A DNA stretch of 64,000 nt from Mobula hypostoma. Lineage: Eukaryota. Positions 9,659 through 61,367 of the stretch are shown here, one piece after another. Position numbers and translations under genes: made by a program. Under the pieces are notes generated by a model. It was not told the DNA's origin and did not search any database. It saw nothing but the letters and a program-made list of their open reading frames with translations. Within the stretch, counting starts at the first letter, position 1. Every line of letters begins with the position of its first letter. Location of the stretch: assembly GCF_963921235.1 (NCBI RefSeq), contig NC_086128.1:4464001-4528000 (forward strand), given 5' to 3'.

Positions 9659-12600
9659 TCAGTGACCTCTGCTGATTTTTGCCATAATGAGAAGGTGCTG
9701 TTGTAGATGTGCTCTGGTCTCAGCGCGGGTTATTTCCCAGGCACAGGCAGTGAATCTCTGAAAGAGAGAAAATGAAATACGTTATATAATAAACCAATAT
9801 CAAGTGTTTGAAATAATGTGCTGGTGATCAAGTGTTAATTCACCTTCTGTTTCAGAAACTCTCTCAGTACATGAAAGTATTTAAGAATTGCGGCATTCTT
9901 CCTTGGTTTGGACTCTGAGCCTGGTTTCCGGACACAATCTTCCAGCTCTTTGAGCTGCCGATCCAAGAGAAGCCTGAAGTGTTCCACTGAGCTCTGGACC
10001 CACGTGACTGAGCTCAGGTTCAAACTGTAGATCCTGCGGAGGTGATGCAGGGTCTGATGGACAATCCAGATCCTTTCCTGTGCCTGTGCAAAACACACGT
10101 GGTGATATTAGTAGGGCCATGGTTCTAGTAAAGTTGAGATTTAGAACAGAATGCTTATAACTCTCAGTAGAATAGGACAAGACAAAATCAGTCATTAACT
10201 TCAAACAAACAGACCTTAACTAAGGGACTGCTAACTTCAGTGAATTTATCAAAGTGCAGAGCCATGTCAACTGCAGCCTACAGTTAATAGTTTAAACAGC
10301 GAAAGGAGAATTTCCTATTAGTAAGGCCTCAGGTGCAGGAGAGACTGCTCGAGTCCTTGACAGGTTGCAAAACTGATTTGCACGAATACATTAATGCTGC
10401 AGGGACTTTCAGTTACAGAGTGAGTCCAGAGAAATTTGGGCTGATCTCCTCAAGACACAGACAGTGAGGGAGAGATTTTCGAGACATGTCCAATCTCATG
10501 AAGAGATTGAAATTCTTAGAGGAATGAAAAACAGGTGAAGGAAGAACAGGAAAGGAGGAAATAAGAAGGGGAGTTTAGCTATATGACAAAAGGTTTGCCA
10601 TGTCAAGAGCCTGATGTACACTGACCATTGCATATTTTTAAAAGAAGTAGAGTGCATCAGCTATTACAACCTTCAGACTTTGGGTGGAGACAAATGAAAG
10701 TGTTACAGAAGCAGTTCCTTTAGCTTCCCCCAACCTCCAATTTTTCTGAACCTCCTTTGAACCCTCTCCAGTTCCAGCACATCCTTTCTCAGAAAAGGGG
10801 CCCAAAACTGCTCACAATATTCCGAATGAGGCCTTACCAGTGCTTTATAATGTTTCAGCATTACATCCTTGCTTTTATATTCAAGTCCACTTGAAATGAA
10901 TGCTGACATTATATTTGCCTGAGCCCGCAAATTAAACTTTAGGGAATCCTGCACAAGGACTCCCAAGTCTCTTTACTTCTCAGTTTTTTGTATTTTCTCC
11001 CCATTTAGCAAAGAGTCAACCCTTTCATTTCTTCTACCAAAGTGCATGAACTACACTTTCTGACACTGTATTCCATCTGCCATTTCTTTGCCCACTCTCC
11101 TAATCTGTCAAAGTCCCTCTGCAGCCTCCCTATTTCCTCAAAACTTCCTGCCCCTCCACCTTCATATTGCCTGCAAACTTTGCAATAAGGCCATCAATTC
11201 CATCATCTAAATTATTGATATATAATGTAAAAAGAATCGGTCCCAACACAGACCCCTGTGGAACACCACTAGTCACCGGCAGCCAACCAGAAAAGGCTCC
11301 CTTTATTCCCAGTCTTTGCCTCCTGCCAATCAGTCACTGTGTTATCCATGCCAGAATCTTTCCTGCTATACCATGGGCCCACAGCTTGTTAAGCCAGCCT
11401 CATGTGTGGCACCTTGTTAAAGGCCTTTTGAAAATCCAAGTACACCACATCAACCAATTCACCTTTGTCCATCCTGCTTTTTAATTCAAAAAATTATAAC
11501 AGGTTTATCAGGCAAGATTTTCCCTTGAGAAAATCATGCTGATTATAGCAAGTACCCTGAGACCTCATCTTTTATAATCAACTCCAACATCCTCCCAGGC
11601 ACTGAGGTCAGACTAACTGACCTGTAGTTTCCTTTCTTCTGCCTCTCACCCTTCTTGAAGAGTGGAGTGGCATTTGCAATTTTCTAGTTTTCCAGAACCA
11701 TTTGAGAATCTAGTGATTCTTGAAAGATCATTATAATGCCTCCATTATCTCTTCAGCCACCTCTTTCAGAACTCTGGGGTGTATACCATCTGGCCCAGGT
11801 GACGTATCTACCTTTAGACCTTTCAGTTTCCCAAGAACCTTCTCTCTAGTTATGGTAACTTCACACAATTAATGCCTCCAGCTACCTGCAACTTCCACCA
11901 TACTGCTGCTGTTTTCCTTAGTAAAGACTGATGCAAAATACTTATTCAGTTCATCTGCCATTTCCTTGTTCCCCATTACTATCCCTCCAGCATCGTTTTC
12001 CAGTGGTCCGATATCTCTCCTGTCTGTCTTTTACACTTTATATATCTGAAGAAACTTTTGATATCCTCTTTAATATTATTGGCCAGCTTACTTTTTTATT
12101 CCATCGTTACCTTCTTAATGACTTTATAGTTCCCTTCTGTTAGTTTTTTAAAGGTTCCCAATCCCCTAACTTCCCACCAATCTTTACTCAATTATATGCC
12201 CTCTCTTTGGCTTTTATGTTGGCTTTGAGTTCACTTCTTTTGCCACAGTTGTGTCATCTTTCCTTTAGAATACTACTTCCTTTTTGAGATGTATATATCC
12301 TCGGCCTTCCAAATTGCTTCCAGAAATTCCAACCATTGCTGCTCTGCTGTCATCCCTGCCAGTGTTCTTTTCCAATCAATTTTGGCCAACTCCTCCCTCA
12401 TGCCTCTGTAATTCCCTATACTCCACTGTAATGCCGATATCAGAGGTGTAAAGGGACGAGGGAGTCTTTGTGCAGCATTCCCTAAAGGTTAGCTTGCAGG
12501 TTGAGTCGTGGTGAGGAAGGCAAATGCAATGTTAGTATTCATTTCGAGAGGACTAGAATATCAAACAAAGATGTAATGCTGAGGCTTTATAAGGTGCTGG

Positions 12601-14480
12601 TGAAGCCTCACTTGGAATATTATAAGCAGTTTTGGGCCCCTTATTTAAGAAAGGATGTGCTGACATTGGAGAGGGTTCAAAGGATGTTCATGAAAATGAC
12701 CCCGGAAATGAAAAGGTTAATATATGAGGTGTATTTGATGGCTCTGGGCCTGTACTTGCTGGGATTTAAAAAGATGGGTGGGTGGGGAGTCTCATTGAAA
12801 CCTACTGAACATTGAAAGATCTGGATAGTGAATTTTATCATATTATGATCACTTTCCCTGATAGGCTCTCTTACCTTGAGCTCTCTAATCAATTCTGGTT
12901 CTTTGCAAAACACCCTATCCAGAATAACTGATACTCTAGTCTGCCCAACCACGAGCTGCTCTGAAAAACCATCTCGTAGGCACTCTAGAAATCCTACCTC
13001 CTGTAACCTGACACCAACCTGATTTTCCCAAACTACCTGTATATTGAAGTCCCCCCAAGACTGCTGTAACATTGCCCTTTTGGCTTTCATTTTCTATCTT
13101 CCATTGTAACTTGGAGGCAACATCCTAACTACTGTTTGGGCATCTGTACAGAAGTTCCATCAGGGACTTTTTACCCTTGCAGTTCCACACTCTATCCACA
13201 GTGGTTCAACACCTTCTGACCCTAGGCCACCTCTTTCTAATGAGTATTTTCTGAGTATGCCATCAAGTAAACAAATCTCAGGGTTGTATATCGTGAAATA
13301 TATCAATTTTGATAATAAATTCACTTGAACTTTGAACAGATATCGTGAGAGTTTCTGTCTTAAGATGTTTGTTCCAAATTCCATCCATGCATTGTGGATT
13401 TTTTTCCTGCTATCGCATCCTGTACTCCAAAGTTTTGCATTAAATCTGTAACATTGGTCATATACATTTCTTCGATTTGGAAAGTTTATAGATGCCTACA
13501 ATCATAGAACCACGCATGATATGGCACACCAGTGTCAGGTCTCCCCTCAGCTTTTATCTCCTCGATACCAAAGGGTCAGCTATAATGTAAAATAATTTAA
13601 CGAGAAACCTCACGATTTTTCAGTGCATTTAAAGTGAAGTAGGTGGTTCCATCACCAATGAAGCACGTAGGTAGTGTGATGATCTGAGAGGATGCAAGCA
13701 TTTCCTGAGATCAACAGAACTCGTAATGTCACTGTAGGGTGCGGGAGAGATATTTAGAGAGAGGAACACAGAGAGAGGGAGAGGAAAAACTAGCAGAAAG
13801 TGATACAGGGTGACATGTTTATTGGTGACAGAGCATGTGAAATGATTAGATTAGATGATGGGAGGGAGTTATATACAGAGAGGGAGCTAACCGTGAGTGG
13901 GATAGAGAGAAAGGGGGCAGCAGTGTGATAACTGAAATGAGATCTATTCCGTGTGAATGGGGTCCTGAAAGTCCGAGTGATAGAGTCAGAAAATGAGTGT
14001 GACATGGAGAGAAAGAATTCATATTCTGATATAGTCAAATTATCTGGGTAAAGTTCGGATCCGATCCTTCACATTACTTAGCATAATATCTCCAATGAAT
14101 TACATTAAAGTAAAATCCAGAGTTTACTCACATGAACCTGCTCCGAAAGTTTCACCAGGTCCAGAGGCTTGGTTTTCAACGACAGCCTCTCAGTCGCACA
14201 CTGTCGGGGGAGGCGGCCACCCTGAGACAGAAGATACCAACGTTACTGATAATCCCACCACACAGAAACACCGGGAGAACAGACTATTTGTTAACAACGA
14301 ACAGCCAGGGACTGTCAGGACCCGTCTCTGGGAGTGGGTTCAACTCACCATTTCATTCAGTTTGCCCAGAGTCTCTGTGTTGAGAACTTGCAGTAACCGC
14401 AGCCTCTCACAGCCCAGGGTCAGGGTCACGGTCAAAAACAGCCACACACTGCAAACTCTCCAAACTCGGCCCAATGCCAT
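9659..14480 (-). CDS. Type I interferon gene B, 4 exons, 186 aa
   Basis: Exons 14349-14480 (MALGRVWRVCSVWLFLTVTLTLGCERLRLLQVLNTETLGKLNEM), 14132-14221 (GGRLPRQCATERLSLKTKPLDLVKLSEQVH), 9844-10083 (AQERIW...KYFHVLREFLKQK), 9659-9757 (RFTACAWEITRAETRAHLQQHLLIMAKISRGH*). GT-AG phase-0 introns; 4 mature cysteines; NLS glycosylation sequon. Confidence 0.94.
10745..13245. mobile_element. Decayed CR1 fragments in intron 2 of gene B (mirrored at ~57781-60281 in G)
   Basis: RT and endonuclease peptides (YKALVRPHSEYCEQFWAP; GDFNIQVVW...FLECLRDGF) on both strands, frameshifted. Confidence 0.85.
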
Positions 14481-14664
14481 CTTCACCCGACACAGAATAA
14501 AGCACCGATATGAGACTAGAATCAGCTCCGAAAACCGGTCTTGTTCGCCGACTGGAACTCAGGATATAGAAACGCCGCGGCTTGTGATCCGGGAGCGGAC
14601 GCCGGTGCTGCCGAGTCCTGTGTCTGGGGATCGTGCTCTGAGCTCTCTCTGCCATACTGCCGGA

Positions 14665-14811
14665 TTTTATATGTTAAAATCCGAAAATGGGTGACATTCG
14701 AAAAGTGAAATGAGTGCGGGATATTTGGGAACGCGTCGGGAGAGAGCGACCTCCGCTCCGAAGGAAGGAATCTGAAAGCGGGAGAGTCCCGCAGCAACGA
14801 CGGGAAAATCC
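14665..14811 (-). promoter_or_regulatory. Gene B promoter: TATA box, ATF/AP-1-like, IRF and two NF-kB-like sites
   Basis: TATAAAA (rc 14665-14671). On the + strand: TGACAT 14692-14697, GAAAAGTGAAA 14700-14710, GAATCTGAAAG 14768-14778, GGGAGAGTCCC 14780-14790, GGGAAAATCC 14802-14811. Confidence 0.8.
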
Positions 14812-15665
14812 GCCACCGGAGAGAACAAGCAGTGTCCAGGCTCCGGACTTCATGCGTTCGTTCAGTTCGGGGGTCCAAGGGGTTGTGGAAGGAGGGTCAG
14901 CTTTAGCAGGGGACGAGGGTAGGTTTGCGAACGTGACTGTGTCCGCACAACTGTGGGGCTACAAATCCGGGTTACAGCAATACCGCACCTTTCAGCGCTG
15001 ATCTTCGAATCCACACAGAGAGATTTTGTTAAACACAAACAAAAAAGCTTGAGGAACTCAGCAGATGAAGCAGCATCTATTGAAATAAATGAACAGTCGA
15101 CATTTCGGGTCGAGACCCGTTCAGCATCAGTAGAATCTCTTGTGTTTAGATTCTGTTAAGACACCAAGCTTCATTAAAACCACGTCGCATGGTGGTCAGT
15201 GCAGAAAGGCTAGGTCACAGCCGAAAACTTCTATAGTTTTGATTAAAAACAATGATATTTTTGTTGACTGTATTCTTTACAGAAGATATTTCTGTTTATC
15301 TTTTAAATTCAATCGTTTGGACACCGAGGCCAGAGGCGATCCCGAGCCTGATCTCTTTTCTTACTTGCCGCTACTCCCGGGAACGTCTTCGGGTCCGTTC
15401 GCAACTTTCGGGACAAGAAAGGGTTTCGTTACTTCCACAATTAGACGTGTTTGTAAATGAGCAAGTAAAACTACAAATCATAAACACCAAAAATTCTGCA
15501 GATGCTGGAACTCCAAATCAATACACACAAAATACTGGAGGAATTCAGCAGGTTATGCAGCATTTATAAAGAGTTGATGTTTCGGGCCGAGGCCCTTCAT
15601 CAGGTCTGAATGAGTCCATGAGTGCTAACGAAGGTTCTCGGCCTGAAACATCGACTGTTTATTCC

Positions 15666-17824: not shown

Positions 17825-18247
17825 TCACGGATCTCTGCTGATTTTTGCCATAATGAGAAGGTGCTGTTGTAGATGTGCTCTGGTCTCAGCGTGGGTTATT
17901 TCCCAGGCACAGGCAGTGAATCTCTGAAAGAGAGAAAATGAAATACGTTATATAATAAACCAATATCAATTGTTTGAAATAATGTGCTGGTGATCACGTT
18001 AATTCACCTTCTGTTTCAGAAACTCCCTCAGTACATGAGAGTATTTAAGAATTGCGGCATTCTTCCTTGGTTTGGACTCTGAGCCTGGTTTCCGGACACA
18101 GACATCCAGCTCTTTGAGCTGCCGATCCAAGAGAAGCCTGAAGTGTTCCACTGAGCTCTGGACCCACGTGACTGAGCTCAGGTTCAAACTGTAGATCCTG
18201 CGGAGGTGATACAGGGTCTGATGGACAATCCAGATCCTTTCCTGCGC
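17825..18247 (-). pseudogene. Type I interferon copy C: exons 3-4 only (exons 1-2 not found)
   Basis: Exon 3 18008-18247 and exon 4 17825-17923 (RFTACAWEITHAETRAHLQQHLLIMAKISRDP*) are open with intact splice sites. Its promoter/5'UTR survives at ~25856-26170 but abuts CR1 sequence; I could not find the exon 1 CDS or exon 2 between 18250 and 25856. Confidence 0.8.
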
Positions 18248-25855: not shown

Positions 25856-26148
25856 CTGAGACCAGAATCAACTCCGAAAACGGGTCCTGATTGTCGTCTG
25901 GTACTCAGGACAAGGAAATGCCGCGGCTTGTGATCCGGGAGCGGACGCCGGTGCTGCCGAGACCTGTGGCTGGGGATCGTGTTGTGAGCTCCCTCTGCCA
26001 TGCTGCCGGATTTTATATGTTAAAATCCGAAAATTGGTGACATTCGGAAAGTTAAACGACCACGGGATATTTGGGAGCGTTTCGGGAGAGAACTCTGAAG
26101 TAAGGAATCTGAAAGCGGGAGAGTCCCGCAGCAGCGACGGGAAAATCC
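25856..26148 (-). promoter_or_regulatory. Orphan promoter and partial 5'UTR of copy C
   Basis: TATA 26011-26017 and both kB-like sites retained; the proximal IRF site is altered (GGAAAGTTAAAC). 5'UTR homology ends at ~25856 against a CR1 3' end. Confidence 0.75.
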
Positions 26149-28088
26149 GCCACCGGAGAGAGCAATCAACACTCCGTCTCCGGTTCAGAACGGGGGTCCA
26201 AGGGATCGTGGATGGAGAGTCAAGTTTTGGCAGGAGAAAAGGTGGGTGGGGGGGGGAAGTAACTGTGTCCATTCACTGGTGGGGGAAGGATTTTTATCTG
26301 CGTTGCGCCTTGCAGCGCCGACCTTCGCATGCGCAGATCGATGTTGTTGAATCCGCCCTTCGCGCTCACCTGAGCTGAAGCCGCAACACAGGGTGGTCAG
26401 TGCCTGAATCACAGCGGCCCGTGGCGACTCTCTTTCTGCGGATACTCATCCCCTTGTTTTTCTTTGCATTTAAACCGCTTCGACTCCGAGTCGGAAAGCA
26501 ATCCCGACCCCGAACTAGATCCCTTTCCTTTCTTACCATTGCTCCGAGAATGAAACCAGCTCCGTTTTCCTCTGGAAAGCGGCCACGTGGCAACTTCACC
26601 CGAAGAGAGAGTGAACGGGGCAAGTGACGCATTCGTCACTCCCGAAAGTAGCCGTGATGGCAAATTAGCAAATAAAACTGCAGATACTGGAGTCTTAAAC
26701 AGCTAAAATTCTCAACTCCATTCCCGGTCGTGCTAACGACCACCACCACTGCCATAGTGAGGTCTAATGTCAACTAGAATAGCACCTTGTCTTCCCTCTC
26801 GGTACTATTGCAAGTGGCTTCTGCTTTTAAATTGTCAAGTCTCACTGCATCCGGCCTGCAGTTTCAACACTTCCTTATTCAATTGGAGAATGTGAGGATG
26901 AAATAAAGATTAAATCCATGCATATTCCATGGAATTAAAAAATGAGGAAATTCATTTCAAAAGGCATGCATATACTCTGTCTACCGAGAGTGGCATTGTA
27001 AAAAGGAAGGCCAAGAAACTTCAAATGTTATATTCCTTGAGGAAGATCATACATATAGTATACCTCCAGCATTGTATAATATTGAAAATACTTAACATCC
27101 ACATCTTTACAAAAAGTTTTTAATTTAGAAAAAATATTTGCATTGCTTATCTCGGAATAGCAATAAATTAACAAAGTTAATGAGCCACAATTGCACATTA
27201 AAATCCAAAATAAATATAAATAAATTAATATAAAATTATCTTAAGACTACCCTGTACTGAGATAACAAGTACATGTTGATTACTGTCCGTTCGGGATAAA
27301 TTCAAGATCAATGGTCCTAGAAGTCCATCACCCACCAGAGCGTCATGCAGGCTTAGAAATTAATGATCGTACACCTATTGCAAGAGCAACAAATGCAGGG
27401 AGAATTTGCAGAAAATCGAATGGCAATAAACAGTTTAGCCTCGGATAGGAGGAGCGCCCTACAACTCGCTAACTGAAATTGCTAACACTAAAGGAAGCTG
27501 GGCAAAAATCGCATCATGTCTTCGACATGACATTGTGGAAAATGAATGATTATCCATCTCACTTTAGTGTTGTAGCTAACATAATGCCAACGATAAGAGA
27601 CGGTGAGAGTGAGGAGCTAAGCACCACCCATCTTCTCCAGTAATTACATTTTACACTGAAGGATCTGCCTGTCTTTAAAACGGGAACGGATTCAGGATCA
27701 TTCACCAAATTGACATCTCAATCCAGGATAGTCATACAAAGATCAATATCAATAAATTAAGTCAACACTGGTATATGAATAAAGATCTAGGCATCTTCTG
27801 TTCTCCCTTACTTGCCAAGTGAAAATCGCAGCAATGTAACAACACAATATATTGTAAAGTCAGAAAAAACTGAAAATGTTCTGCTGTTGATGGGGATTCA
27901 TGATGTAACTTTTTTGCTGACCGAAATTATTAACCCAGTTTTCTTCTCCACGCGTAATATTTCCGTCAACTTCTGTTTACGCTCAAATTTCCGGCATTCG
28001 TCTTTTTTTTCTTTTTCCATAAATAAAGCGCACTTTAAGTTAATAGCCATTAATCTCAGTCGCCTATGTGGTTGTCTCTGCAGAATCT

Positions 28089-30863: not shown

Positions 30864-31047
30864 CTTCACCCGACACAGAATAAAGTACCGATCTGAGACT
30901 AGAATCAGCTCCGAAAACCGGTCTTGTTCGCCGACTGGAACTCGGGATATAGAAACGCCGCGGCTTGTGATCCGGGAGCGGACGCCGGTGCTGCCGAGTC
31001 CTGTGTCTGGGGATCGTGCTCTGAGCTCTCTCTGCCATACTGCCGGA

Positions 31048-44100: not shown

Positions 44101-44925
44101 TCAAGAAGAGCAGTCAGCTGTGGTGGACACAGGTTGCATGATTGAAGAGATGGGAGGATTTCCAGGATATCGATAGAAAATATAAATTCATTGCGTGGTT
44201 GAGATAATGAGAGAGTGAAACAAGATGGCGGGGGGGGGTGAGTCAAGGACGGTAATATGTTTAGAAGTGGAAACACAGTAGAACAAGTGAGATGATTGGA
44301 GAGAATTAGATACAAGAGAGTGAGCTACTAGTGAGTGTGTTACAGAGAGAGAGATGGAGGAGGGTGATCACTAAAGTGAAATCTATTCGGTATGCATGCG
44401 TTCTTCGGAGTCAGTGATAGTGATTCTTAAGAAGGTGATGTGCACAGAACAAAAGAAACGATATTCTGCTGTTACCACATTCTTCGGTTAGAGTTCAGAT
44501 CAGATTCTTCACAATATTTACATTAATGTTTTGAATAAATAATATTAAAGCAAAATCTAGAGTTTACTCACATGAACCTCCGCGGAAAGTTTCACCAGGT
44601 TCAAGGGCTGGGTCAGCTCCCCAGTCGCACACTGTCGGGGGAGGCGGCCACCCTGAGACAGAAGATACCAACGTTACTGACAATCCCCCCACACAGAAAC
44701 ACCGGGAGAACAGACTATTTGTAATCACCTGATTGTTAACAACGAACAGCCCGGGACTGTCAGGACCCGTCTCTGGGAGCAGGTTCAACTCACCATTTCA
44801 TTCAGTTTGCCCAGAGTCTCTGTGTTGCGAACTTGCAGTAACCGCAGCCTCTCACAGCCCAGGGTCAGGGTCACAGTCAAAAACAGCCACACACTGCAAA
44901 CTCTCCAAACACGGCCCAATGCCAT
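41186..44925 (-). CDS. Type I interferon gene E (variant: 3-aa deletion, CAWK, C-terminal extension), 196 aa
   Basis: Exons 44794-44925 (...GCERLRLLQVRNTETLGKLNEM), 44572-44652 (81 nt, GGRLPRQCATGELTQPLNLVKLSAEVH), 41428-41667 (PQERIW...KYFHVLREFLKQK), 41186-41323 (GFSDCAWKIIHDRTRRHLQQLLLIMGKVNKDHRRLSRDNIKESQD*). Frame intact; the usual TGA is CGA. Confidence 0.88.
41790..43140 (+). mobile_element. Decayed CR1 in intron 2 of gene E
   Basis: VPQGSVLG...ARFADD and RRFTRIIPGIKGLTYEERL remnants; ctatgtcttatggtctta tail. Confidence 0.85.
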
Positions 44926-45109
44926 CTTCACCCGATACAGAATAAAGCACCGATATGAGACTAGAATCAGCTCCGAAAACCGGTCTTGTTCGCCGACTGG
45001 AACTCAGGATATAGAAACGCCGCGGCTTGTGATCCGGGAGCGGACGCCGGTGCTGCCGAGTCCTGTATCTGGGGATCGTGTTGTGAGCTCTCTCTGCCAT
45101 ACTGCCGGA

Positions 45110-45256
45110 TTTTATATGTTAAAATCCGAAAATGGGTGACATTCGAAAAGTGAAATGACTGCGGAATATTTGGGAATGCGTCGGGAGAGAGCGACCTTCG
45201 CTCTGAAGTAAGGAATCTGAAAGCGGGAGAGTCCCGCAGCAACGACGGGAAAATCC
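45110..45256 (-). promoter_or_regulatory. Gene E promoter (same module as B)
   Basis: Same motifs at constant offset +30445 from gene B. Confidence 0.8.
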
Positions 45257-45966
45257 GCCACCGGAGAGAACAAGCAGCGCCCAGGCTCCGGACTTCTTGA
45301 CGGATTCAAGGTGTTTTGGAGGGAGGGTCAGGCTTGGCAGAGGACGAGGGTGGGATGAGGAAGTGACAGTGTCGGTGTATGGGTGGAGGCTGTATTTTAT
45401 CATGGTTATAGTAACACTGTGTCGTTCAGCGCTTATATTCGGATCCACAGAGAGAATTCCTGTTAAATCCGTCCTCGCACTCACCCAACTCCGGTGACAC
45501 CACAACACAAGGTGGACAGTGCCGAGAACCTTCGTCACAGCCAACCTGTGGCGATTCGCTCTGCGGGAGTAGACTTCCCCGTGACTGTGGTCGCTAAGTA
45601 CAGAATGCTTCTGATATCTGCGTTCTTTTAAAATACATTTCTGTTCTTTTTATTATTTAAACGCTTCCACTCCGATTCAGAAAGTGATGCAACCCTCTTC
45701 CCTATTGAATATAGATTCTAAAGATTTTCCTCTTTTTCCGTGTTGTAAGCACTTCACTCCACTTTATACCTTACGCTGTAGTTTTACACTCGCCAGAATA
45801 AGCAAGTACATACATTCTGTTGTGAGTTGTCTCAGTTTTATATTTCAATGTTGTTACACGGATTTAATCTCTTGGTTTTAGTTTTTTATATTTATTTTGA
45901 AACGAGAAATGGTTGAATCCGAAGTGAAAATGCCACAAGGACCAAGATGTACACAGCAGATGCCTC

Positions 45967-46166: not shown

Positions 46167-46908
46167 ACAGCAGGTGCCTCTTGCAATAGTAACGAGAGGG
46201 AAGGTAAGGTTTTCTTTTCCCAGTTTACGTTGTACCTCACTCTGGCAGTGGAGGAGGTCCCCGTAGCACGAATGAGAGTGGGGTTGAGAATTACAGCGGT
46301 TTCAAACCCTTCAATCTGTAGTTTTATTTGATCATTTACAAACACGTTCAATTTCGGAAGTGACGAAACCCCCTTTTCTTGCCTCGGGTTACTTTCGCTT
46401 TTCTTCCAGTTGCAAACGGAGACGGAGTCTTTCCTGGGAGCAGCGGCAAGAAAGAAAAGCGATCGGGGTCTGGATCGCCATCCGACTCAGTGTCCAAGTG
46501 GTTCGATTTAAACGAGAAACCGAAATGTCTTATTTAAATACAGACTACAAACACACTCTGTGCTTAGAGAGCACGGTCACGGACTGGAGTACTCGCGCAG
46601 TGAGAGTCGCAGTGGCCTTGGCTTTCTGCGCTGACCACCCTGCGATGTGGTTTCATTGGAACTGGGTGAGTGCTAGGTGCGAATTTAACAGAATCTGTTT
46701 GTGGCTCCGAAGATCAGCTCTGAAACGCGCAGTGTAACTGTAACCCTGATAAAAATGCAGCCCCCATCGAGGCACGAACACAGTCACGTCCGCAAACCCA
46801 CCCTCGTTCCCTGCTAAAGCTGACCCACCCTCCACAACCCTTTTGACCCCCCGATCTGAACGACGCAAAAAATCCACAGCCTGGGCGCTGCTTGTTCTCT
46901 CCGGTGGC

Positions 46909-47055
46909 GGATTTTCCCGTCGTTGCTGCGGGACTCTCCCGCTTTCAGATTCCTTACTTCAGAGCGAAGGTCGCTCTCTCCCGACGCATTCCCAAATATC
47001 CCGCAGTCATTTCACTTTTCGAATGTCACCCATTTTCGGATTTTAACATATAAAA
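46909..47055 (+). promoter_or_regulatory. Gene F promoter (divergent partner of E)
   Basis: GGATTTTCCC, GGGACTCTCCC, TTTCACTTTTC, ATGTCA and TATAAAA; mirror image of the E promoter (coordinate sum 92165). Confidence 0.8.
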
Positions 47056-47239
47056 TCCGGCAGTATGGCAGAGAGAGCTCAGAGCACGATCCCCAGACAC
47101 AGGACTCGGCAGCACCGGCGTCCGCTCCCGGATCACAAGCCGCGGCGTTTCTATATCCCGAGTTCCAGTCGGCGAACAAGACCGGTTTTCGGAGCTGATT
47201 CTAGTCTCATATCGGTGCTTTATTCTGTGTCGGGTGAAG

Positions 47240-50200
47240 ATGGCATTGGGCCGAGTTTGGAGAGTTTGCAGTGTGTGGCTGTTTTTGACCGTGACCCTGA
47301 CCCTGGGCTGTGAGAGGCTGCGGTTACTGCAAGTTCTCAACACAGAGACTCTGGGCAAACTGAATGAAATGGTGAGTTGAACCCACTCCCAGAGACGGGT
47401 CCTGACAGTCCCGGGTGTTCATTGTTAACAATCAGGTGATTACAAATAGTCTGTTCTCCCGGTGTTTCTGTGTGGTGGGATTATCAGTAACGTTGATATC
47501 TTCTGTCTCAGGGTGGCCGCCTCCCCCGACAGTGTGCGACTGAGAGGCTGTCGTTGAAAACCAAGCCCCTGGACCTGGTGAAACTTTCGGCGGAGGTTCA
47601 TGTGAGTAAACTCTGGATTTTACTTTAACGTAATTTATTCGAGGCATTTGTGCAATGCTAAGAACCTGACCTGAAATTTAACAGGTGAACAAACTATTAC
47701 AGAATGTCAATGCTTTTTCTCCATGTCATTGGCTTTTTCTGTCACTCTGGCTCGGATTCTAAAGAAAACATTCAAAGGGAATATATCTGACAGCGGCTTT
47801 CACACCCTGTCGATCTCCTCCTGTGTTCCACTCACTGGCGGTCCACACTCTGTCTCTAACATCCTCTCCTCATCTCACATACTCTAACACGAAACATGCT
47901 GCTCTCTGTGACCGTCTGCTTGCTACTGTCACTCCCCCTCCCTGCACTTTCTGGTCACTCTGTCTGATGATCTCAACTACCCATTGAATTTATCCCTTCT
48001 GACCATCTGCTGCAAATCTTCTTATCCCCTCAAAATCTCCTCAAAGCATCACACAACCTGTGTCCACCATGGGTGATGAAATCAACTGCACTATCCCAAT
48101 AATCCAACACCTGATTTTAAGTGTCTCCTCCGACCTAGTTAAGTGATTCTTCATCTTAGCTGGCCCATTGGGATCAAGGAGGCGAGGGTTTTGTGTGTGT
48201 GTGTGGGGGGGGGGGCGGGATAGGGGTGTATCAAATTATGAGTGGTGGAATTAGAATGTACTGCATTATTCTTCCCCACAGCTGAGGTGTCTACATTGAT
48301 TTAAGACAAAAAAGTAAGAGGTTTGGATGGGATATTAGGAAAATATTCCTCCAGGGTATACTTGAAATTTGGAACCCAGCATCTGAAAAGATATTGAGGG
48401 CAGAAATTTTCACAACATTTAAGGAGTATCTACTGTATATGATTGCTTCAATTGCCAAGGCTACTGAGCAGCTATTGGTGAATGGAGCATGAGAACAATG
48501 CAGCACAGTACATGCACGATGTCTATTCTAATATCAATCTAACCCTTCCCTCCCTCATAGTTCTCCATTTTTTCTTTCTTCCATATCTCTATCTAACAGT
48601 CTCTGAAATGTCCCAAATGTATTTGCGTCGACCACCACCCTGGCAGGGCGTTCTATGCATCCACTATTCTCTGTGTAAAAGACCTACCTCTGACACTGCC
48701 CCCCCCCCATACATTCCTCCGAACACCTCAAAGTTATGCCCCTTGTATTAGCTATTTTTATCCTGGGAAAAAGTCTCTGTTGCACACTCTACCTTTGCCT
48801 GTTATCATCTTGTACACCTCTATCAAGTCACCTCTCGTCCTCCTTCTCTCCAAAGAGAAAAGCCCAAATTATCCTCATGAGATATGCCCTCTAATCTGAT
48901 CAGCATCATGGTAAATCTCCTCTGCACCCTCTCTAAAGCCATGTACTTCCTATATTGAAGTGAACAAAACTGAGCACAATACTCCAAATGTGGTCTAACC
49001 AGAGCTTTATAGAAGAGTTATAGAACTGCAACATTACCTCACAGCACTTAAACTCAATCCTATGAGTAACTCCATATGCCTTCTTAATCACCCTGTCAAC
49101 TTCCATAGCAACTTTAAGGGACCTATGAACATGGACTTCAAGATCCCGCTTTTCCTCCACTTAAGATCCCTGCCATTAACTCTGTATTCTGCCTTCAATT
49201 TTGACCTTCCAAAGCGAAACACTTGATACTTTTCTAGATTGAACATCATCTGCCATTTTTCAGCCCAGCTCTGCATTCCATGAATGTCCCATTGTAACCC
49301 AAATCAATCTTCTATTCTATGCATAACAACATCAATCTTTGTGTTATCTGCAAACTTACTAACTCTCCCTTCCGCTTCCTGATCTAAGTCATTTAAAAAT
49401 ATTACAAAGGGAAGGGTCTCAGAAAAGATTTTTGCAAACACCACGAGAGACAGACTTCCAGGCAGAATGTGTTCCATCTGCTACCACCTTCTGCCTTCTG
49501 TGGGCAAGCCAACTCTGAATCCACTTAGCCAAGTTTCCTTGAACTCAATGCCTCTTTACTTTTTGAATGAGCTTACCATGGGGAACCTTGTCAACTGCCT
49601 TACTAAAATCCATACATACAACATCCACTCTTCTGCCTTGGGGATTTCCTTAATTCGACTTGTGATAGCCTTTTCATGTCCAGTTCTAGCTCTTGTAAGT
49701 CCATTCATTAGCTGCTGCCTGGCTACTAGCAGATGAGATGGGCCAAATGGTCTAATTATGCTCCTATGTGCTATAGCCTACCTTGTAACTCTCAAGAGTC
49801 TGATCCTTCCTTACTAAATTTTAGGTACGTTTCTTTCTTCCTCTAAACTAGATGTTCCACTTCTCTTGTCAACCATGATTCCTTCACCCTACCATCCTTT
49901 CCTTGCCTGAATGGGGCAAACCTATCCAGAATCACATGCAAGTACTACAGCCTTCACATTTCCATTGTGCATTTCTCTGAGTGCATCTGTTCCCAATTTA
50001 TGCTCTCAAGTTTCTACCTAATAGCATCATAATTGACCTGCCCCCAATTAAATAATTTACAATACTGTCAGCTCCTATCCTTCTAAAAGGCTATGGTAAA
50101 GGTGTGGGAGTTGTAGTCACTGTCTCCAAAATGCTCATCTAAAAAAGATATGTCACCTGACCACGTTCATTGGCTAGAACCAGGCCTAATATGACCTCTC

Positions 50201-51892
50201 CTCTAGTTGGCCTGTCTGCATACTGTGTCAGGAATCCTTCCAGGACAGACCCAACATGCTCTGTCCCATCTAAACTTTTTGCACTGAAGAGCTGACAATC
50301 AATTTTAGAGAACTTGAAGTCACCAATGACAACAACCCTGTATCTTTCCAAAATCTGCCTCCCAATCTGCTGCTCAGTGTATTGGATGATGTTGGGGGGA
50401 TCTACAGAAATCTTTCAATAGAGTGACTGCTTCCTTGCTGTTTCTGACTTCCATCAACACTGACTCCATAGACGATCCCTCCAGGACGTCCTGCCTTTTT
50501 GCAGCTATGATATCATCCCTGATTAGCAATGCCACTCCCCCACCTCTTTTACCTCTCTCCCTGTCCCTTTTGAAAAATCTAAACCCCAGAAACTGCAGCA
50601 AAAAATTCCTGCCCTTGTGACAAATCCTCTGACCTATCAATCTGCTTTTGTATCACTCTGAATGAGATTTCTTTAGGTGGCTGCTTGATGGGTGGTATGG
50701 ACTGAGAGGACTCGAGCAGCTTTTTTTCTGTGACTCTTACTTGCCCCTACTCAAGTTCTGAAGTGTAGAAGATGATCTGCTTATCTTAAAAATGTGTGAT
50801 GGCCATTGGGCATCAGGTACCACAGGGTGCAGACACAGGGGACCTCAGCTCACATTACAAGACACCCCTAAAAAGTTCCTACTCCCATAGTCACCTGTCA
50901 TCTATTCCCCTAACCACTTCACTGACGTTCCAATTCCTTGGGCTAACATAATTACCATGCAACTGTTTATGTCATTGTCTTTATAAGTTACTGTTTAATC
51001 TTTTTAACAACCCATTCAGACAACTGTCTGTCTCACCTCCATGATTCTCCCCTTTATGAGATTGCAGATCTTTATAAAATCTCCCCCTCACTATTTCTGG
51101 TGAAAGGAGAGCAGACTAAATTCCTCTGGTCTCTGTGTAACTAACATCCTGTGGCATTGATGCCATTCCCTCATTCAGTCAAGCATCTTGTCATTCTTCA
51201 TCTAAGTCCTTATTTGTGGTTCATTGCTCATTCCCTGTTGAAACCTCTAACTGTACACTGCAATTGACAACGATGTGACCTTCAATTCACAGTTGTTAGT
51301 AGCCCTCCGTTTGAGGTCTGTATATTTTAAGTTGATGTTTGATTTTGTCTTGTACTAAGACTCATAAATGTTTTGTTCTAATTCTAAACGTTTGTGAGAC
51401 CACGACCCTACTAATGTCACCATGTGTGTTTTGCACAGGCACAGGAAAGGATCTGGATTGTCCATCAGACCCTGCATCACCTCCGCAGGATCTACAGTTT
51501 GAACCTGAGCTCAGTCACGTGGGTCCAGAGCTCAGTGGAACACTTCAGGCATCTCTTGGATCGGCAGCTCAAAGAGCTGGATGTCTGTGTCCGGAAACCA
51601 GGCTCAGAGTCCAAACCAAGGAAGAATGCCGCAATTCTTAAATACTTTCAGAAATTGAGAGAGTTTTTGAAACAGAAGGTGAATTGATATTAAAACATGT
51701 GCCTGCCAATACATTTATTTATCTACTTTATACTTGTTCATGATCTAATTTTTCACTATTGAGTACATTTGCCTTTTTCTTCCTCCCTTTTAGGGATTCA
51801 GCAACTGTGCCTGGGAGGTAACCCGCACTGAGACCACCATGCATTTAAAACAGCTCCTTCTCATTATGGCAAAAATCAGCAGAGATCACTGA
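47240..51892 (+). CDS. Type I interferon gene F, 4 exons, 186 aa
   Basis: Exons 47240-47371, 47512-47601 (GGRLPRQCATERLSLKTKPLDLVKLSAEVH), 51439-51678 (AQERIW...FRHLLD...KYFQKLREFLKQK), 51794-51892 (GFSNCAWEVTRTETTMHLKQLLLIMAKISRDH*). GT-AG phase 0. Confidence 0.94.
48490..50630 (-). mobile_element. Decayed CR1 fragments in intron 2 of gene F
   Basis: RDRERGKRGGGVALLIR, VVIGDFKF and WAEKWQMMFNLEK remnants. Confidence 0.8.
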
Positions 51893-56160: not shown

Positions 56161-59100
56161 CTGAACGAACGCATGAAGTCCGGAGCCTGGACACTGCTTG
56201 TTCTCTCCGGTGGCGGATTTTCCCGTCGTTGCTGCGGGACTCTCCCGCTTTCAGATTCCTTCCTTCGGAGCGGAGGTCGCTCTCTCCCGACGCGTTCCCA
56301 AATATCCCGCACTCATTTCACTTTTCGAATGTCACCCATTTTCGGATTTTAACATATAAAATCCGGCAGTATGGCAGAGAGAGCTCAGAGCACGATCCCC
56401 AGACACAGGACTCGGCAGCACCGGCGTCCGCTCCCGGATCACAAGCCGCGGCGTTTCTATATCCTGAGTTCCAGTCGGCGAACAAGACCGGTTTTCGGAG
56501 CTGATTCTAGTCTCATATCGGTGCTTTATTCTGTGTCGGGTGAAGATGGCATTGGGCCGAGTTTGGAGAGTTTGCAGTGTGTGGCTGTTTTTGACCGTGA
56601 CCCTGACCCTGGGCTGTGAGAGGCTGCGGTTACTGCAAGTTCTCAACACAGAGACTCTGGGCAAACTGAATGAAATGGTGAGTTGAACCCACTCCCAGAG
56701 ACGGGTCCTGACAGTCCCTGGCTGTTCGTTGTTAACAAATAGTCTGTTCTCCCGGTGTTTCTGTGTGGTGGGATTATCAGTAACGTTGGTATCTTCTGTC
56801 TCAGGGTGGCCGCCTCCCCCGACAGTGTGCGACTGAGAGGCTGTCGTTGAAAACCAAGCCTCTGGACCTGGTGAAACTTTCGGAGCAGGTTCATGTGAGT
56901 AAACTCTGGATTTTACTTTAATGTAATTCATTGGAGATATTATGCTAAGTAATGTGAAGGATCGGATCCGAACTTTACCCAGATAATTTGACTATATCAG
57001 AATATGAATTCTTTCTCTCCATGTCACACTCATTTTCTGACTCTATCACTCGGACTTTCAGGACCCCATTCACACGGAATAGATCTCATTTCAGTTATCA
57101 CACTGCTGCCCCCTTTCTCTCTATCCCACTCACGGTTAGCTCCCTCTCTGTATATAACTCCCTCCCATCATCTAATCTAATCATTTCACATGCTCTGTCA
57201 CCAATAAACATGTCACCCTGTATCACTTTCTGCTAGTTTTTCCTCTCCCTCTCTCTGTGTTCCTCTCTCTAAATATCTCTCCCGCACCCTACAGTGACAT
57301 TACGAGTTCTGTTGATCTCAGGAAATGCTTGCATCCTCTCAGATCATCACACTACCTACGTGCTTCATTGGTGATGGAACCACCTACTTCACTTTAAATG
57401 CACTGAAAAATCGTGAGGTTTCTCGTTAAATTATTTTACATTATAGCTGACCCTTTGGTATCGAGGAGATAAAAGCTGAGGGGAGACCTGACACTGGTGT
57501 GCCATATCATGCGTGGTTCTATGATTGTAGGCATCTATAAACTTTCCAAATCGAAGAAATGTATATGACCAATGTTACAGATTTAATGCAAAACTTTGGA
57601 GTACAGGATGCGATAGCAGGAAAAAAATCCACAATGCATGGATGGAATTTGGAACAAACATCTTAAGACAGAAACTCTCACGATATCTGTTCAAAGTTCA
57701 AGTGAATTTATTATCAAAATTGATATATTTCACGATATACAACCCTGAGATTTGTTTACTTGATGGCATACTCAGAAAATACTCATTAGAAAGAGGTGGC
57801 CTAGGGTCAGAAGGTGTTGAACCACTGTGGATAGAGTGTGGAACTGCAAGGGTAAAAAGTCCCTGATGGAACTTCTGTACAGATGCCCAAACAGTAGTTA
57901 GGATGTTGCCTCCAAGTTACAATGGAAGATAGAAAATGAAAGCCAAAAGGGCAATGTTACAGCAGTCTTGGGGGGACTTCAATATACAGGTAGTTTGGGA
58001 AAATCAGGTTGGTGTCAGGTTACAGGAGGTAGGATTTCTAGAGTGCCTACGAGATGGTTTTTCAGAGCAGCTCGTGGTTGGGCAGACTAGAGTATCAGTT
58101 ATTCTGGATAGGGTGTTTTGCAAAGAACCAGAATTGATTAGAGAGCTCAAGGTAAGAGAGCCTATCAGGGAAAGTGATCATAATATGATAAAATTCACTA
58201 TCCAGATCTTTCAATGTTCAGTAGGTTTCAATGAGACTCCCCACCCACCCATCTTTTTAAATCCCAGCAAGTACAGGCCCAGAGCCATCAAATACACCTC
58301 ATATATTAACCTTTTCATTTCCGGGGTCATTTTCATGAACATCCTTTGAACCCTCTCCAATGTCAGCACATCCTTTCTTAAATAAGGGGCCCAAAACTGC
58401 TTATAATATTCCAAGTGAGGCTTCACCAGCACCTTATAAAGCCTCAGCATTACATCTTTGTTTGATATTCTAGTCCTCTCGAAATGAATACTAACATTGC
58501 ATTTGCCTTCCTCACCACGACTCAACCTGCAAGCTAACCTTTAGGGAATGCTGCACAAAGACTCCCTCGTCCCTTTACACCTCTGATATCGGCATTACAG
58601 TGGAGTATAGGGAATTACAGAGGCATGAGGGAGGAGTTGGCCAAAATTGATTGGAAAAGAACACTGGCAGGGATGACAGCAGAGCAGCAATGGTTGGAAT
58701 TTCTGGAAGCAATTTGGAAGGCCGAGGATATATACATCTCAAAAAGGAAGTAGTATTCTAAAGGAAAGATGACACAACTGTGGCAAAAGAAGTGAACTCA
58801 AAGCCAACATAAAAGCCAAAGAGAGGGCATATAATTGAGTAAAGATTGGTGGGAAGTTAGGGGATTGGGAACCTTTAAAAAACTAACAGAAGGGAACTAT
58901 AAAGTCATTAAGAAGGTAACGATGGAATAAAAAAGTAAGCTGGCCAATAATATTAAAGAGGATATCAAAAGTTTCTTCAGATATATAAAGTGTAAAAGAC
59001 AGACAGGAGAGATATCGGACCACTGGAAAACGATGCTGGAGGGATAGTAATGGGGAACAAGGAAATGGCAGATGAACTGAATAAGTATTTTGCATCAGTC

Positions 59101-61329
59101 TTTACTAAGGAAAACAGCAGCAGTATGGTGGAAGTTGCAGGTAGCTGGAGGCATTAATTGTGTGAAGTTACCATAACTAGAGAGAAGGTTCTTGGGAAAC
59201 TGAAAGGTCTAAAGGTAGATACGTCACCTGGGCCAGATGGTATACACCCCAGAGTTCTGAAAGAGGTGGCTGAAGAGATAATGGAGGCATTATAATGATC
59301 TTTCAAGAATCACTAGATTCTCAAATGGTTCTGGAAAACTAGAAAATTGCAAATGCCACTCCACTCTTCAAGAAGGGTGAGAGGCAGAAGAAAGGAAACT
59401 ACAGGTCAGTTAGTCTGACCTCAGTGCCTGGGAGGATGTTGGAGTTGATTATAAAAGATGAGGTCTCAGGGTACTTGCTATAATCAGCATGATTTTCTCA
59501 AGGGAAAATCTTGCCTGATAAACCTGTTATAATTTTTTGAATTAAAAAGCAGGATGGACAAAGGTGAATTGGTTGATGTGGTGTACTTGGATTTTCAAAA
59601 GGCCTTTAACAAGGTGCCACACATGAGGCTGGCTTAACAAGCTGTGGGCCCATGGTATAGCAGGAAAGATTCTGGCATGGATAACACAGTGACTGATTGG
59701 CAGGAGGCAAAGACTGGGAATAAAGGGAGCCTTTTCTGGTTGGCTGCCGGTGACTAGTGGTGTTCCACAGGGGTCTGTGTTGGGACCGATTCTTTTTACA
59801 TTATATATCAATAATTTAGATGATGGAATTGATGGCCTTATTGCAAAGTTTGCAGGCAATATGAAGGTGGAGGGGCAGGAAGTTTTGAGGAAATAGGGAG
59901 GCTGCAGAGGGACTTTGACAGATTAGGAGAGTGGGCAAAGAAATGGCAGATGGAATACAGTGTCAGAAAGTGTAGTTCATGCACTTTGGTAGAAGAAATG
60001 AAAGGGTTGACTCTTTGCTAAATGGGGAGAAAATACAAAAAACTGAGAAGTAAAGAGACTTGGGAGTCCTTGTGCAGGATTCCCTAAAGTTTAATTTGCG
60101 GGCTCAGGCAAATATAATGTCAGCATTCATTTCAAGTGGACTTGAATATAAAAGCAAGGATGTAATGCTGAAACATTATAAAGCACTGGTAAGGCCTCAT
60201 TCGGAATATTGTGAGCAGTTTTGGGCCCCTTTTCTGAGAAAGGATGTGCTGGAACTGGAGAGGGTTCAAAGGAGGTTCAGAAAAATTGGAGGTTGGGGGA
60301 AGCTAAAGGAACTGCTTCTGTAACACTTTCATTTGTCTCCACCCAAAGTCTGAAGGTTGTAATAGCTGATGCACTCTACTTCTTTTAAAAATATGCAATG
60401 GTCAGTGTACATCAGGCTCTTGACATGGCAAACCTTTTGTCATATAGCTAAACTCCCCTTCTTATTTCCTCCTTTCCTGTTCTTCCTTCACCTGTTTTTC
60501 ATTCCTCTAAGAATTTCAATCTCTTCATGAGATTGGACATGTCTCGAAAATCTCTCCCTCACTGTCTGTGTCTTGAGGAGATCAGCCCAAATTTCTCTGG
60601 ACTCACTCTGTAACTGAAAGTCCCTGCAGCATTAATGTATTCGTGCAAATCAGTTTTGCAACCTGTCAAGGACTCGAGCAGTCTCTCCTGCACCTGAGGC
60701 CTTACTAATAGGAAATTCTCCTTTCGCTGTTTAAACTATTAACTGTAGGCTGCAGTTGACATGGCTCTGCACTTTGATAAATTCACTGAAGTTAGCAGTC
60801 CCTTAGTTAAGGTCTGTTTGTTTGAAGTTAATGACTGATTTTGTCTTGTCCTATTCTACTGAGAGTTATAAGCATTCTGTTCTAAATCTCAACTTTACTA
60901 GAACCATGGCCCTACTAATATCACCACGTGTGTTTTGCACAGGCACAGGAAAGGATCTGGATTGTCCATCAGACCCTGCATCACCTCCGCAGGATCTACA
61001 GTTTGAACCTGAGCTCAGTCACGTGGGTCCAGAGCTCAGTGGAACACTTCAGGCTTCTCTTGGATCGGCAGCTCAAAGAGCTGGAAGATTGTGTCCGGAA
61101 ACCAGGCTCAGAGTCCAAACCAAGGAAGAATGCCGCAATTCTTAAATACTTTCATGTACTGAGAGAGTTTCTGAAACAGAAGGTGAATTAACACTTGATC
61201 ACCAGCACATTATTTCAAACACTTGATATTGGTTTATTATATAACGTATTTCATTTTCTCTCTTTCAGAGATTCACTGCCTGTGCCTGGGAAATAACCCG
61301 CGCTGAGACCAGAGCACATCTACAACAGC
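56161..61329. repeat. Right arm of ~5.17 kb inverted duplication (partner 9697-14865)
   Basis: As above; includes the same decayed CR1 fragments in intron 2. Confidence 0.93.
56215..56361 (+). promoter_or_regulatory. Gene G promoter (inverted copy of B)
   Basis: Mirror image of the B promoter (coordinate sum 71026). Confidence 0.8.
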
Positions 61330-61367
61330 TCCTTCTCATTATGGCAAAGATAAACTCAGGACTCTGA
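56546..61367 (+). CDS. Type I interferon gene G, 4 exons, 186 aa (near-identical to B except C-terminus)
   Basis: Exons 56546-56677, 56805-56894, 60943-61182, 61269-61367 (RFTACAWEITRAETRAHLQQLLLIMAKINSGL*). ATTTA-rich 3' flank and AATAAA at 61528-61533. Confidence 0.94.

Follow-up and report, generated by a model that had tools for sequence, protein, structure and literature searches.

Gene conversion has been described in mammals among the interferon-alpha (IFN-alpha) genes of the type I interferon (IFN) clusters (Gillespie & Carter 1983 and Woelk et al. 2007, both as cited in PMC6640115; Manry et al. 2011, PMC3244034). The phylogeny of type I IFNs is hard to resolve, and birth-and-death versus concerted evolution has been debated (PMC6640115); for the IFN1 genes of cartilaginous fish, birth-and-death evolution was argued from protein trees by Redmond et al. 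2019 (PMC6640115). The stretch of DNA analysed here, hereafter the window, comprises 64,000 nucleotides of contig NC_086128.1 (positions 4,464,001 to 4,528,000 of the forward strand, assembly GCF_963921235.1) and is a type I interferon gene cluster of the lesser devil ray, Mobula hypostoma, with seven copies (A to G) of a four-exon type I interferon gene. Five of these copies (B, D, E, F and G) are nearly identical in two islands, one running from the promoter core to just beyond exon 2 and the other covering the first part of exon 3 (exon 3a), and are much less alike in the remainder of exon 3 (exon 3b), exon 4 and the surrounding non-coding DNA. It is highly probable that the copies represent old paralog lineages in which the two islands have been kept near-identical by repeated ectopic (non-allelic) gene conversion, a reading that is carried by directly observed mosaic site patterns, a contrast in divergence at silent sites, incongruent trees, and exchanges that took place after speciation.

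The cluster resembles the mammalian IFN-alpha clusters in that type I IFN genes lie in tandem or inverted order, paralogs within a species are homogenised by non-allelic conversion, and orthology is blurred. Unlike the mammalian IFN-alpha genes, which are intronless and are converted across the coding region, the ray genes have three introns, conversion is confined to two islands with 2-4 kb of diverged, transposon-rich intron between them, and the last 42 codons form trans-species types with clean orthology. Like the IFN1 genes of Redmond et al. 2019 (PMC6640115), they are intron-containing chondrichthyan type I IFNs with lineage-specific expansions; that study proceeded without an analysis of within-gene mosaicism, whereas in the ray cluster a whole-protein tree mixes two histories. 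Both evolutionary modes are found here within single genes, with about three quarters of the gene tracking the species and about one quarter tracking the paralog type. Since the parts of a gene have different histories, trees built from whole ray and shark interferon proteins will mislead, and exon 3b-4 is the part from which orthology is best taken.

Sharp-edged partial conversion is a classical finding in the fetal globin genes (5' part converted, 3' part diverged), in opsin genes and in exons of the major histocompatibility complex (MHC). The ray genes share with such partially converted genes a homogenised promoter and 5' exons, an unconverted 3' part, sharp breaks, mosaic sites and possibly an enrichment in guanine and cytosine (GC). 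They differ from the globin, opsin and MHC cases in being a cytokine family, in having two islands per gene, and in having a boundary within an exon, in the middle of helix D, that is conserved across ray families. A full-text literature search found no exon- or island-limited conversion in ray or elasmobranch interferons, and the cluster, whose lineage parted from the bony vertebrates about 450 million years ago, is a new example of a known process and not a new kind of system.

Two islands in the Mobula hypostoma interferon genes

Self-BLAST of the window revealed repeated modules of ~1 kb and ~0.5 kb, plus one 5.4-kb inverted repeat. A gene model was built first on copy G from open frames and splice signals and was then carried to the other copies by alignment. 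Intact frames and canonical splice sites were found in six of the seven copies, encoding 186 amino acids (aa) in A, B, D, F and G and 196 aa in E; exon 2 is 90 nt in length, and its donor, GTGAGT, is the same in gene A. A profile search showed that the models of B, D, E, F and G match annotated M. hypostoma proteins residue for residue. The reverse strand carries gene B (XP_062893734; 9659..14480, exons 14480-14349, 14221-14132, 10083-9844 and 9757-9659), gene D (XP_062893862; 28089..30863, exons 30863-30732, 30591-30502, 28527-28288 and 28187-28089) and gene E (XP_062893948; 41186..44925, exons 44925-44794, 44652-44572, 41667-41428 and 41323-41186). The forward strand carries gene F (XP_062893759; 47240..51892, exons 47240-47371, 47512-47601, 51439-51678 and 51794-51892) and gene G (XP_062893863; 56546..61367, exons 56546-56677, 56805-56894, 60943-61182 and 61269-61367).

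Segment alignments of B, D, E, F and G delimited the two islands from flanks, intron 3, exon 4 and 3' untranslated region (3'UTR) that are much less alike. The 5' island extends from -385 relative to the ATG to 31 nt beyond the exon-2 donor (about 760 bp), and the exon-3a island comprises 28 nt ahead of exon 3 plus its first ~200 nt (about 230 bp). Identity among the five genes is 97-100% in the promoter core (-385 to ATG), 95-100% in exon 1, 94-100% in intron 1, 87-100% in exon 2 and 90-100% in the initial 31 nt of intron 2, and it drops to 62-74% in the alignable upstream flank (-900..-385) and to 47-64% at the start of intron 2 past the island. In the second island, copies B to G are 89-100% identical over the last 28 nt of intron 2 and, with C included, 96-100% identical over the first 201 nt of exon 3, whereas the end of intron 2 preceding the island shows 38-68% identity. 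Between the B/C/G, D, E and F lineages, identity is 59-69% in intron 3, 73-83% in exon 4 and 57-71% in the 3'UTR. The boundaries are discrete and the flanks diverged yet alignable (38-74%), a pattern that is characteristic of ectopic conversion.

By alignment, the islands of D are located at 30477..31238 (promoter core, exon 1, intron 1, exon 2 and ~31 nt of intron 2) and 28325..28555 (28 nt of intron 2 and ~203 nt of exon 3), both on the reverse strand. Those of E, also on the reverse strand, lie at 44547..45300 and 41428..41742, the latter being 95% identical to B from 75 nt ahead of exon 3 to the exon-3 donor. On the forward strand, the 5' island of F (46865..47626, seen in both self-BLAST and alignment) stands head-to-head with that of E and is followed by its exon-3a island at 51411..51641, and the islands of G (56161-56919 and 60915-61145) both fall within the arm of the B/G repeat described below.

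An earlier, sequence-only reading of this DNA had counted 68/70 identical residues between B and D in the first 70 codons of exon 3, set against 21/32 (B vs D) and 17/32 (B vs E) in a more divergent exon 4, and had given the length of intron 2 as 1974-4048 bp. All of these counts were reproduced, intron 2 measuring 1974 bp in D, 2904 bp in E, 3837 bp in F and 4048 bp in both B and G. The same reading had described the block from promoter to exon-2 donor as near-identical in B to G; this applies to B, D, E, F and G and not to C, a remnant that has no exons 1-2. It had also placed a break in similarity near KYF in exon 3, which is where the break lies in D and F, while E continues B-like to the exon-3 donor and C shows no break towards B.

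Among B, D, E, F and G, divergence at synonymous sites (dS) is 0.02-0.10 in exons 1-2 and 0.00-0.09 in exon 3a. Between lineages it is 0.24-0.71 in exon 4, and in exon 3b it is 0.41-0.47 for D and F compared with B, E and G. Raw divergence of introns and flanks between paralog lineages is about 30-60%; intron 1 has been homogenised along with its neighbouring exons, and intron 3 has not. Gene conversion instead of uniform duplication had been proposed from the letters, on the understanding, set in advance, that a dS in exon 3 as high as intron divergence would speak against it. The dS of the islands proved to be far below the divergence of exon 4, introns and flanks, which favours conversion.

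Mosaic structure in the 5' island was assessed in B, D, E and F, with G dropped as it is identical to B there. The 725 ungapped columns contain 43 variable sites, of which 15 are parsimony-informative, and these are divided among all three possible splits (BD/EF 6, BF/DE 5, BE/DF 4). The split patterns alternate in runs, with at least six switches (permutation P=0.026 for clustering), and at least nine informative sites are in conflict where, by a rough estimate, ~0.3 homoplasies would be expected. Judged on these site counts, the pattern in the 5' island is far beyond chance. The occurrence of all three splits, together with the mosaic of copy C (P<0.0005, see below), is what ectopic conversion predicts.

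Cross-species comparisons were made with annotated proteins of M. birostris, Hypanus sabinus and Hemitrygon akajei, over 42-100 aligned columns. Every M. hypostoma gene compared has a 1:1 M. birostris partner of the same exon-4 type, including G' and E', and the partners differ at 0-2/42 residues over exon 3b+4, with at most one difference within exon 4. The exon 3b-4 types D, E and F are also present in Hypanus sabinus, and type F in Hemitrygon akajei. Over exon 3b+4, Mobula-Hypanus orthologs are separated by a protein distance of 0.15 and paralogs within species by 0.37. The relation is reversed in exon 3a (orthologs 0.160, Mobula paralogs 0.029) and in exon 1 (orthologs 0.114, within-species paralogs 0.061 and 0.023), such that paralogs are closer than orthologs throughout exons 1-3a, as is typical of concerted evolution. 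A maximum-likelihood (ML) tree of exons 2-3a places all ten Mobula sequences in one clade versus the dasyatids (98/95), and F-type and D-type clades are rejected there (approximately unbiased (AU) test, p=0.0003 and 0.0009). In the ML tree of exon 3b-4 the types are the clades (F 96/93, D 92/90, E 91/94, B/G 78/72), and a Mobula clade is rejected (AU p=0.0002). Two comparisons that the sequence-only reading had named, per-exon trees and a sister species, thus both agree with conversion: the exon trees, whose congruence for all exons had been set in advance as counter-evidence, are significantly incongruent across species, and the proteins cluster by species group in exons 2-3a and by type in exon 3b-4. 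Exchange after speciation was observed as well. M. hypostoma B, G and D have SEQVH and 5/5 M. birostris genes have SAE(V/I)H, and M. birostris G' is F'-like in exons 2-3a (PLEL, RHLL, DV) with its B-type exon 3b-4 retained.

Probable mechanism and the boundary in helix D

We infer that the molecular mechanism is heteroduplex-based conversion confined by sequence divergence. The lineages to which the paralogs belong (B/G, C, D, E and F, with A further removed) are old, and stingrays already have the D, E and F types of exon 4. Conversion would act where near-identity suffices for heteroduplex formation, covering 5.2 kb in B/G, the islands alone in exchanges between B/G, D, E and F, and a 375-bp tract in A. 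Its tracts are short (tens to a few hundred bp) and patchy, so that the same few variants are combined differently in each copy, and because divergence outside the islands would be too high for conversion, the islands would perpetuate themselves. One homogenised module consists of the promoter, 5'UTR, exons 1-2 and intron 1, and the other of the exon-3 acceptor with helices B, C and half of D. Residues 145-186 (the rest of helix D, and helix E with CAWE), intron 3 and the 3'UTR fall outside the islands in intact genes, and this unconverted part evolves as a set of separate orthologous lineages under moderate purifying selection.

Conversion had been proposed to be limited to tracts, and this is true of the islands among B/G, D, E and F and untrue of the B/G pair itself, in which 5,169 bp covering the whole gene are shared. 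The proposal that exon 4 escapes conversion is correct insofar as exon 4 is outside the islands in intact genes, but a B-type tract in C and the B-type exon 4 of G indicate that it has no mechanistic exemption. That exon 4 diversifies was not borne out over the time covered, given its 1:1 M. birostris orthologs with 0-2/42 aa changed, the presence of the types in Hypanus, and ratios of nonsynonymous to synonymous divergence (dN/dS) of 0.27-0.88.

Several points weigh against repeated conversion of the islands. The clustering of site patterns in the 5' island reaches only P=0.026, and the cross-species tests are limited to 42-100 protein columns and to short contigs that pool paralogs. The edges of the islands are almost alike in all copies, which is unexpected for purely random tracts, although shared edges are compatible with selection or with a self-reinforcing limit of homology. 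The islands have a GC content of 0.47-0.57, as against 0.27-0.49 for exons 3b and 4, intron 3, the flanks of the islands in intron 2 and the 3'UTR, the far-upstream flank (0.45-0.51) overlapping the island range, and GC at third codon positions is 0.64-0.67 in the islands versus 0.42-0.58 outside. This contrast fits GC-biased conversion and is not decisive: it is seen in gene A too, which makes it weak evidence for biased conversion, and GC-rich 5' gene ends are usual in general. Finally, no RNA coverage was seen over the exons in two putative RNA runs, which matched only the transposon parts; as interferon genes are usually silent unless induced, the missing exon coverage is uninformative on expression.

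The protein products have the features of type I IFNs. Pfam PF00143 was matched by exon 3 of G (44.8 bits) and exon 3 of A (34.5 bits; cut-off 26.8), and phmmer gave matches to solved fish and human IFNs at 1e-14 to 1e-9. An AlphaFold2 model of F (predicted local distance difference test score 86.4) has helices at 27-44, 75-92, 104-125, 138-153 and 158-185, which form a five-helix bundle with CAWE on the C-terminal helix E, and Foldseek template-modelling scores to 7wkh, 3piv and 1au1 (fish IFNa/IFN1, human IFN-beta) are 0.75-0.84. CAWE is found in six of the seven copies (a six-frame scan detected it six times), and gene E has CAWK instead. Mapped onto the model, the signal peptide and helix A come from exon 1, the AB region or loop from exon 2, helices B, C and D from exon 3, and helix E from exon 4. 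Residue 145, where the constant part ends, lies halfway along helix D, so that the homogenisation claimed earlier for helices A-D extends to mid helix D and no further.

Two NF-kB-like decamers, an IRF/PRDI-like element and a TATA box were recognised in the 5' island, all of them as consensus matches only. In G they were located by a regular-expression scan at 56215..56361 on the forward strand, as GGATTTTCCC (-331), GGGACTCTCC (-310), TTTCACTTTTCG (-230) and TATAAA (-191). Because these motifs are shared, the copies are predicted to be induced alike. At the other end of the gene, HMMER alignments to IFN-omega and IFN-alpha2 put ray residues 165, 166, 169, 170 and 173 opposite R144, A145, M148, R149 and S152 in the usual numbering of IFN-alpha2; all five belong to the positions that vary between the ray types. 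In IFN-alpha2, M148A lowers the affinity for IFNAR2 50-fold, and R149A is among the weakest binders (PMC8529159). Diversifying selection on exon 4 was looked for as dN/dS above 1 between types, or as change faster than that of neutral flanks, and neither was found: dN/dS between types is 0.27-0.88, and intron 3 and the 3'UTR have changed more than exon 4. The sole value above 1 (B vs C, 1.95) comes from 0.5 synonymous and 3.5 replacement changes within one type. The retained exon-4 types may differ in receptor binding, as an adaptive reading of exon 4 as a variable tip would have it. B/G, D, E and F constitute a natural experiment, having near-identical promoters and helices A-C and different helix D/E faces, suited to the question of how one receptor pair distinguishes interferon subtypes.

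It is possible, though we hold the idea tentatively, that selection maintains the boundary near codon 145 by removing conversions that overwrite the receptor-facing helix D/E module of intact genes. In Mobula, Hypanus and Hemitrygon alike, sequence clusters by species ahead of the break after KYF and by type beyond it, the independent F'-to-G' exchange in M. birostris stopped short of exon 3b, and the sole cross-type overwrite of exon 4 is in the pseudogene C; the types are also conserved between species (0-2/42 aa), and the type-variable residues align to the IFNAR2-contact positions of IFN-alpha2, M148A with its 50-fold effect included (PMC8529159). A mechanical limit accounts for the same facts, however, since at 59-69% identity in intron 3 and 73-83% in exon 4 heteroduplex could not extend further. 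The pseudogene case is a single one, and a dN/dS below 1 denotes constraint and not functional difference. A bolder form of the idea is more doubtful: the break after codon 144 (KYF) might be a selectively maintained conversion boundary that predates the mobulid-dasyatid split and divides the gene into a module for induction, secretion and probably IFNAR1 binding, and paralog-specific helix D/E modules that tune IFNAR2-type binding. If so, receptor-face 'alleles' would be stored as paralogs on a common chassis.

That the islands owe their likeness simply to very strong purifying selection, with drift in exon 4 and the flanks and no conversion at all, is very improbable. Such selection could draw on the fact that the islands hold the promoter motifs and most of the coding sequence and have edges common to all copies, but synonymous sites and intron 1 are as homogenised as replacement sites. 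Gene A is 38% different from B-G in exon 3a (dS 0.86-0.92, dN 0.44-0.47), so the sequence is free to vary and exon 3a is not unusually constrained. All three 2:2 site patterns are present and clustered, Mobula paralogs are closer than Mobula-Hypanus orthologs in exons 1-3a, the trees are incongruent, and between two Mobula-like organisms the islands have diverged by 1.6-2.7%, like the introns (1.7-1.8%).

There is just as little to be said for recent whole-gene duplicates in which exon 4, intron 3, UTR and flanks then evolved fast, exon 4 under positive selection. Exon 4 dN/dS does reach 0.6-0.9 in some pairs, and its variable positions align to receptor-contact residues of IFN-alpha2 (PMC8529159). 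The flanks, intron 3 and 3'UTR have nevertheless diverged as much as exon 4 or more, which is not explicable by protein-level selection, and no pair among the D, E, F and B-C-G types has dN/dS above 1. The exon-4 types have M. birostris orthologs, D, E and F occur in Hypanus, and the D, E and F clades are supported at 91-96; trans-species types of this kind contradict a recent duplication.

The inverted pair B/G

B (9697..14865, reverse strand) and G (56161..61329, forward strand) are inverted, 41 kb apart, and identical over 5,169 bp with 0 differences. The self-BLAST alignment of the pair is 99.27% identical over 5,361 bp, and 38/39 of the differences are concentrated upstream of -385, in a stretch (55996-56160) of 79% identity. 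The remaining difference is at 61330, and homology stops within exon 4 at 61348 (junction 61348..61349, forward strand); beyond this point the final six codons (KINSGL*) are peculiar to G, and its 3' flank is unrelated. The KINSGL tail is also found in M. birostris G'. Most of intron 2 in B/G is filled by high-copy transposon DNA (about 57700-60300 in the G arm).

Public Logan contigs, which are short and pool paralogs, were aligned to G. The best-matching contig set, probably from the source animal, has a depth of 10-11 over sequence shared by B and G, 3.9-5.1 over G-specific flanks, and 19.8 (~4x single-copy) over the four-copy variant of exon 3a. These depths of ~2x and ~4x indicate that the copy numbers in the assembly are real. 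In a second, closely related organism, contigs depart from G at 51/2846 positions (1.8%), with a depth of 11.2-11.7 over the shared intron and 6.3-7.3 over G-specific flanks (~2x), and one of them spans the G-specific junction (61319-61613). Because this junction is crossed by a contig of the second organism, the B/G duplication is older than the split of the two organisms, which are 1.6-2.7% apart in the islands and 1.7-1.8% in the introns. The arms therefore differ by 0/5,169 within the species and by 1.8% between species, as read from short contigs, which is the signature of palindrome-like arm-to-arm conversion. On this comparison of arms, B/G is a case of whole-gene conversion between inverted repeats, the transposon-filled intron included. 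An assembly artefact, at least for B/G (one gene written twice, or haplotypes taken for paralogs), is scarcely credible, for although a mis-join could produce a perfect inverted identity of 5,169 bp, contig depth is 10.9 over B/G-shared sequence versus 3.9-5.1 over the flanks and 19.8 over the four-copy variant, contigs cross the G-specific junction, and in M. birostris, which was assembled independently, B' and G' are distinct proteins carrying the B and G tails, and the order E(-) F(+) G(+) recurs.

Arm-to-arm conversion is known in the palindromes of the primate Y chromosome. B/G is like them in having arms that are identical within the species and 1.8% from a relative, though the duplication junction predates the split, and is unlike them in that the arms are short (5.2 kb), the 41-kb spacer contains four other paralogs, and the G' arm of M. 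birostris has been partly overwritten by its neighbour F'. The pair offers a small, datable case of whole-gene conversion between inverted repeats.

The transposon DNA at 57700-60300, and that at 61500-61899 in the 3' flank of G, has a contig depth of 10^4-10^5 in both ray organisms. Reverse-transcriptase-like open frames were noted in this transposon DNA, which was also present in the putative RNA runs. A B-specific insertion of ~120 bp at 14900-15030, about 450-550 bp upstream of the B ATG, contains GGGTCTCGACCCGAAATGTCGACTG; it resembles a short interspersed repeat and sits where the B/G homology fades.

Copies A, C and E and other observations

Gene A (669..3092, forward strand; exons 669-800, 976-1065, 2646-2885 and 2994-3092) is a divergent type I IFN paralog, with 55-72% nucleotide identity to B-G in exons 3-4. 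Self-BLAST and alignment revealed a short conversion tract at 475..849 on the forward strand (about -195 to +180), 94% identical to the 5' island of B-G. The tract covers 375 bp round the TATA box and exon 1, and the rest of A is 40-78% identical; dS against B-G is 0.27-0.33 in exon 1 versus 0.86-0.92 in exon 3a.

Copy C (17825..18247, reverse strand) is truncated to exon 3 (18247-18008) and exon 4 (17923-17825), both open. Exons 1-2 of C were not found in 18248-25856 with blastn (word 7) or tblastn (word 2). A promoter remnant at 25857..26165 (reverse strand) is 83-84% identical to the 5' island; close to the ATG it gives way to unrelated repeats. Over exon 3a, C and D agree at 201/201 nt, and a maximum chi-square analysis located a B-type conversion tract over exon 3b, intron 3 and exon 4 (17829..18044, reverse strand), in which 53 informative sites of C in a row, from +203 to +416, agree with B (0/2000 permutations, P<0.0005). 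Past this tract C is D-like again, its 3'UTR being closest to that of D. Two inverted 1.8-kb repeats, 78% identical to each other, lie between exon 3 of C and the promoter remnant (18793-20579 and 23042-24827), in the place expected for exons 1-2; both are probably transposon copies that had a part in truncating C.

Gene E has an in-frame 9-nt deletion of three codons in exon 2 (44572-44652), and in exon 4 it has lost the stop, which adds 13 codons, and has CAWK and several altered helix-E residues. The helix-E changes include positions aligned to R144 and A145 of IFN-alpha2. M. birostris E' has the same helix-E changes, read-through tail and exon-2 deletion, and a 196-aa Hypanus protein has the read-through tail, keeps CAWE and is without the exon-2 deletion. 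Because M. birostris shares these features and the Hypanus protein shares the tail, E is an old, conserved, odd subtype and not a decaying gene.

In Heterodontus francisci, nine IFN proteins are >90% identical with evenly spread variable sites, and no island pattern was found there. Hemitrygon akajei (P0105-P0118) has twelve near-identical F-type copies that differ chiefly in helix E, with 3/32 exon-4 sites polymorphic in at least two copies (I/T, T/A, H/N) versus 2/110 in exons 2-3, and all four combinations of I/T and H/N present. The numbers are very small, and the pattern may point to shuffling, or to selection on the receptor helix, in an array of recent origin.

An interferon relic of ~60 bp was seen at 5713-5773 on the reverse strand, in which ~28 nt from the end of intron 2 are followed by ~30 nt from the start of exon 3; it is 89-93% identical to D and E, and the rest of the gene is not around it. 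Genes E and F are arranged head-to-head (44925-47240), with their ATGs 2.3 kb apart and their 5' islands mirrored, and the M. birostris annotation has the same E(-) F(+) G(+) order and spacing.

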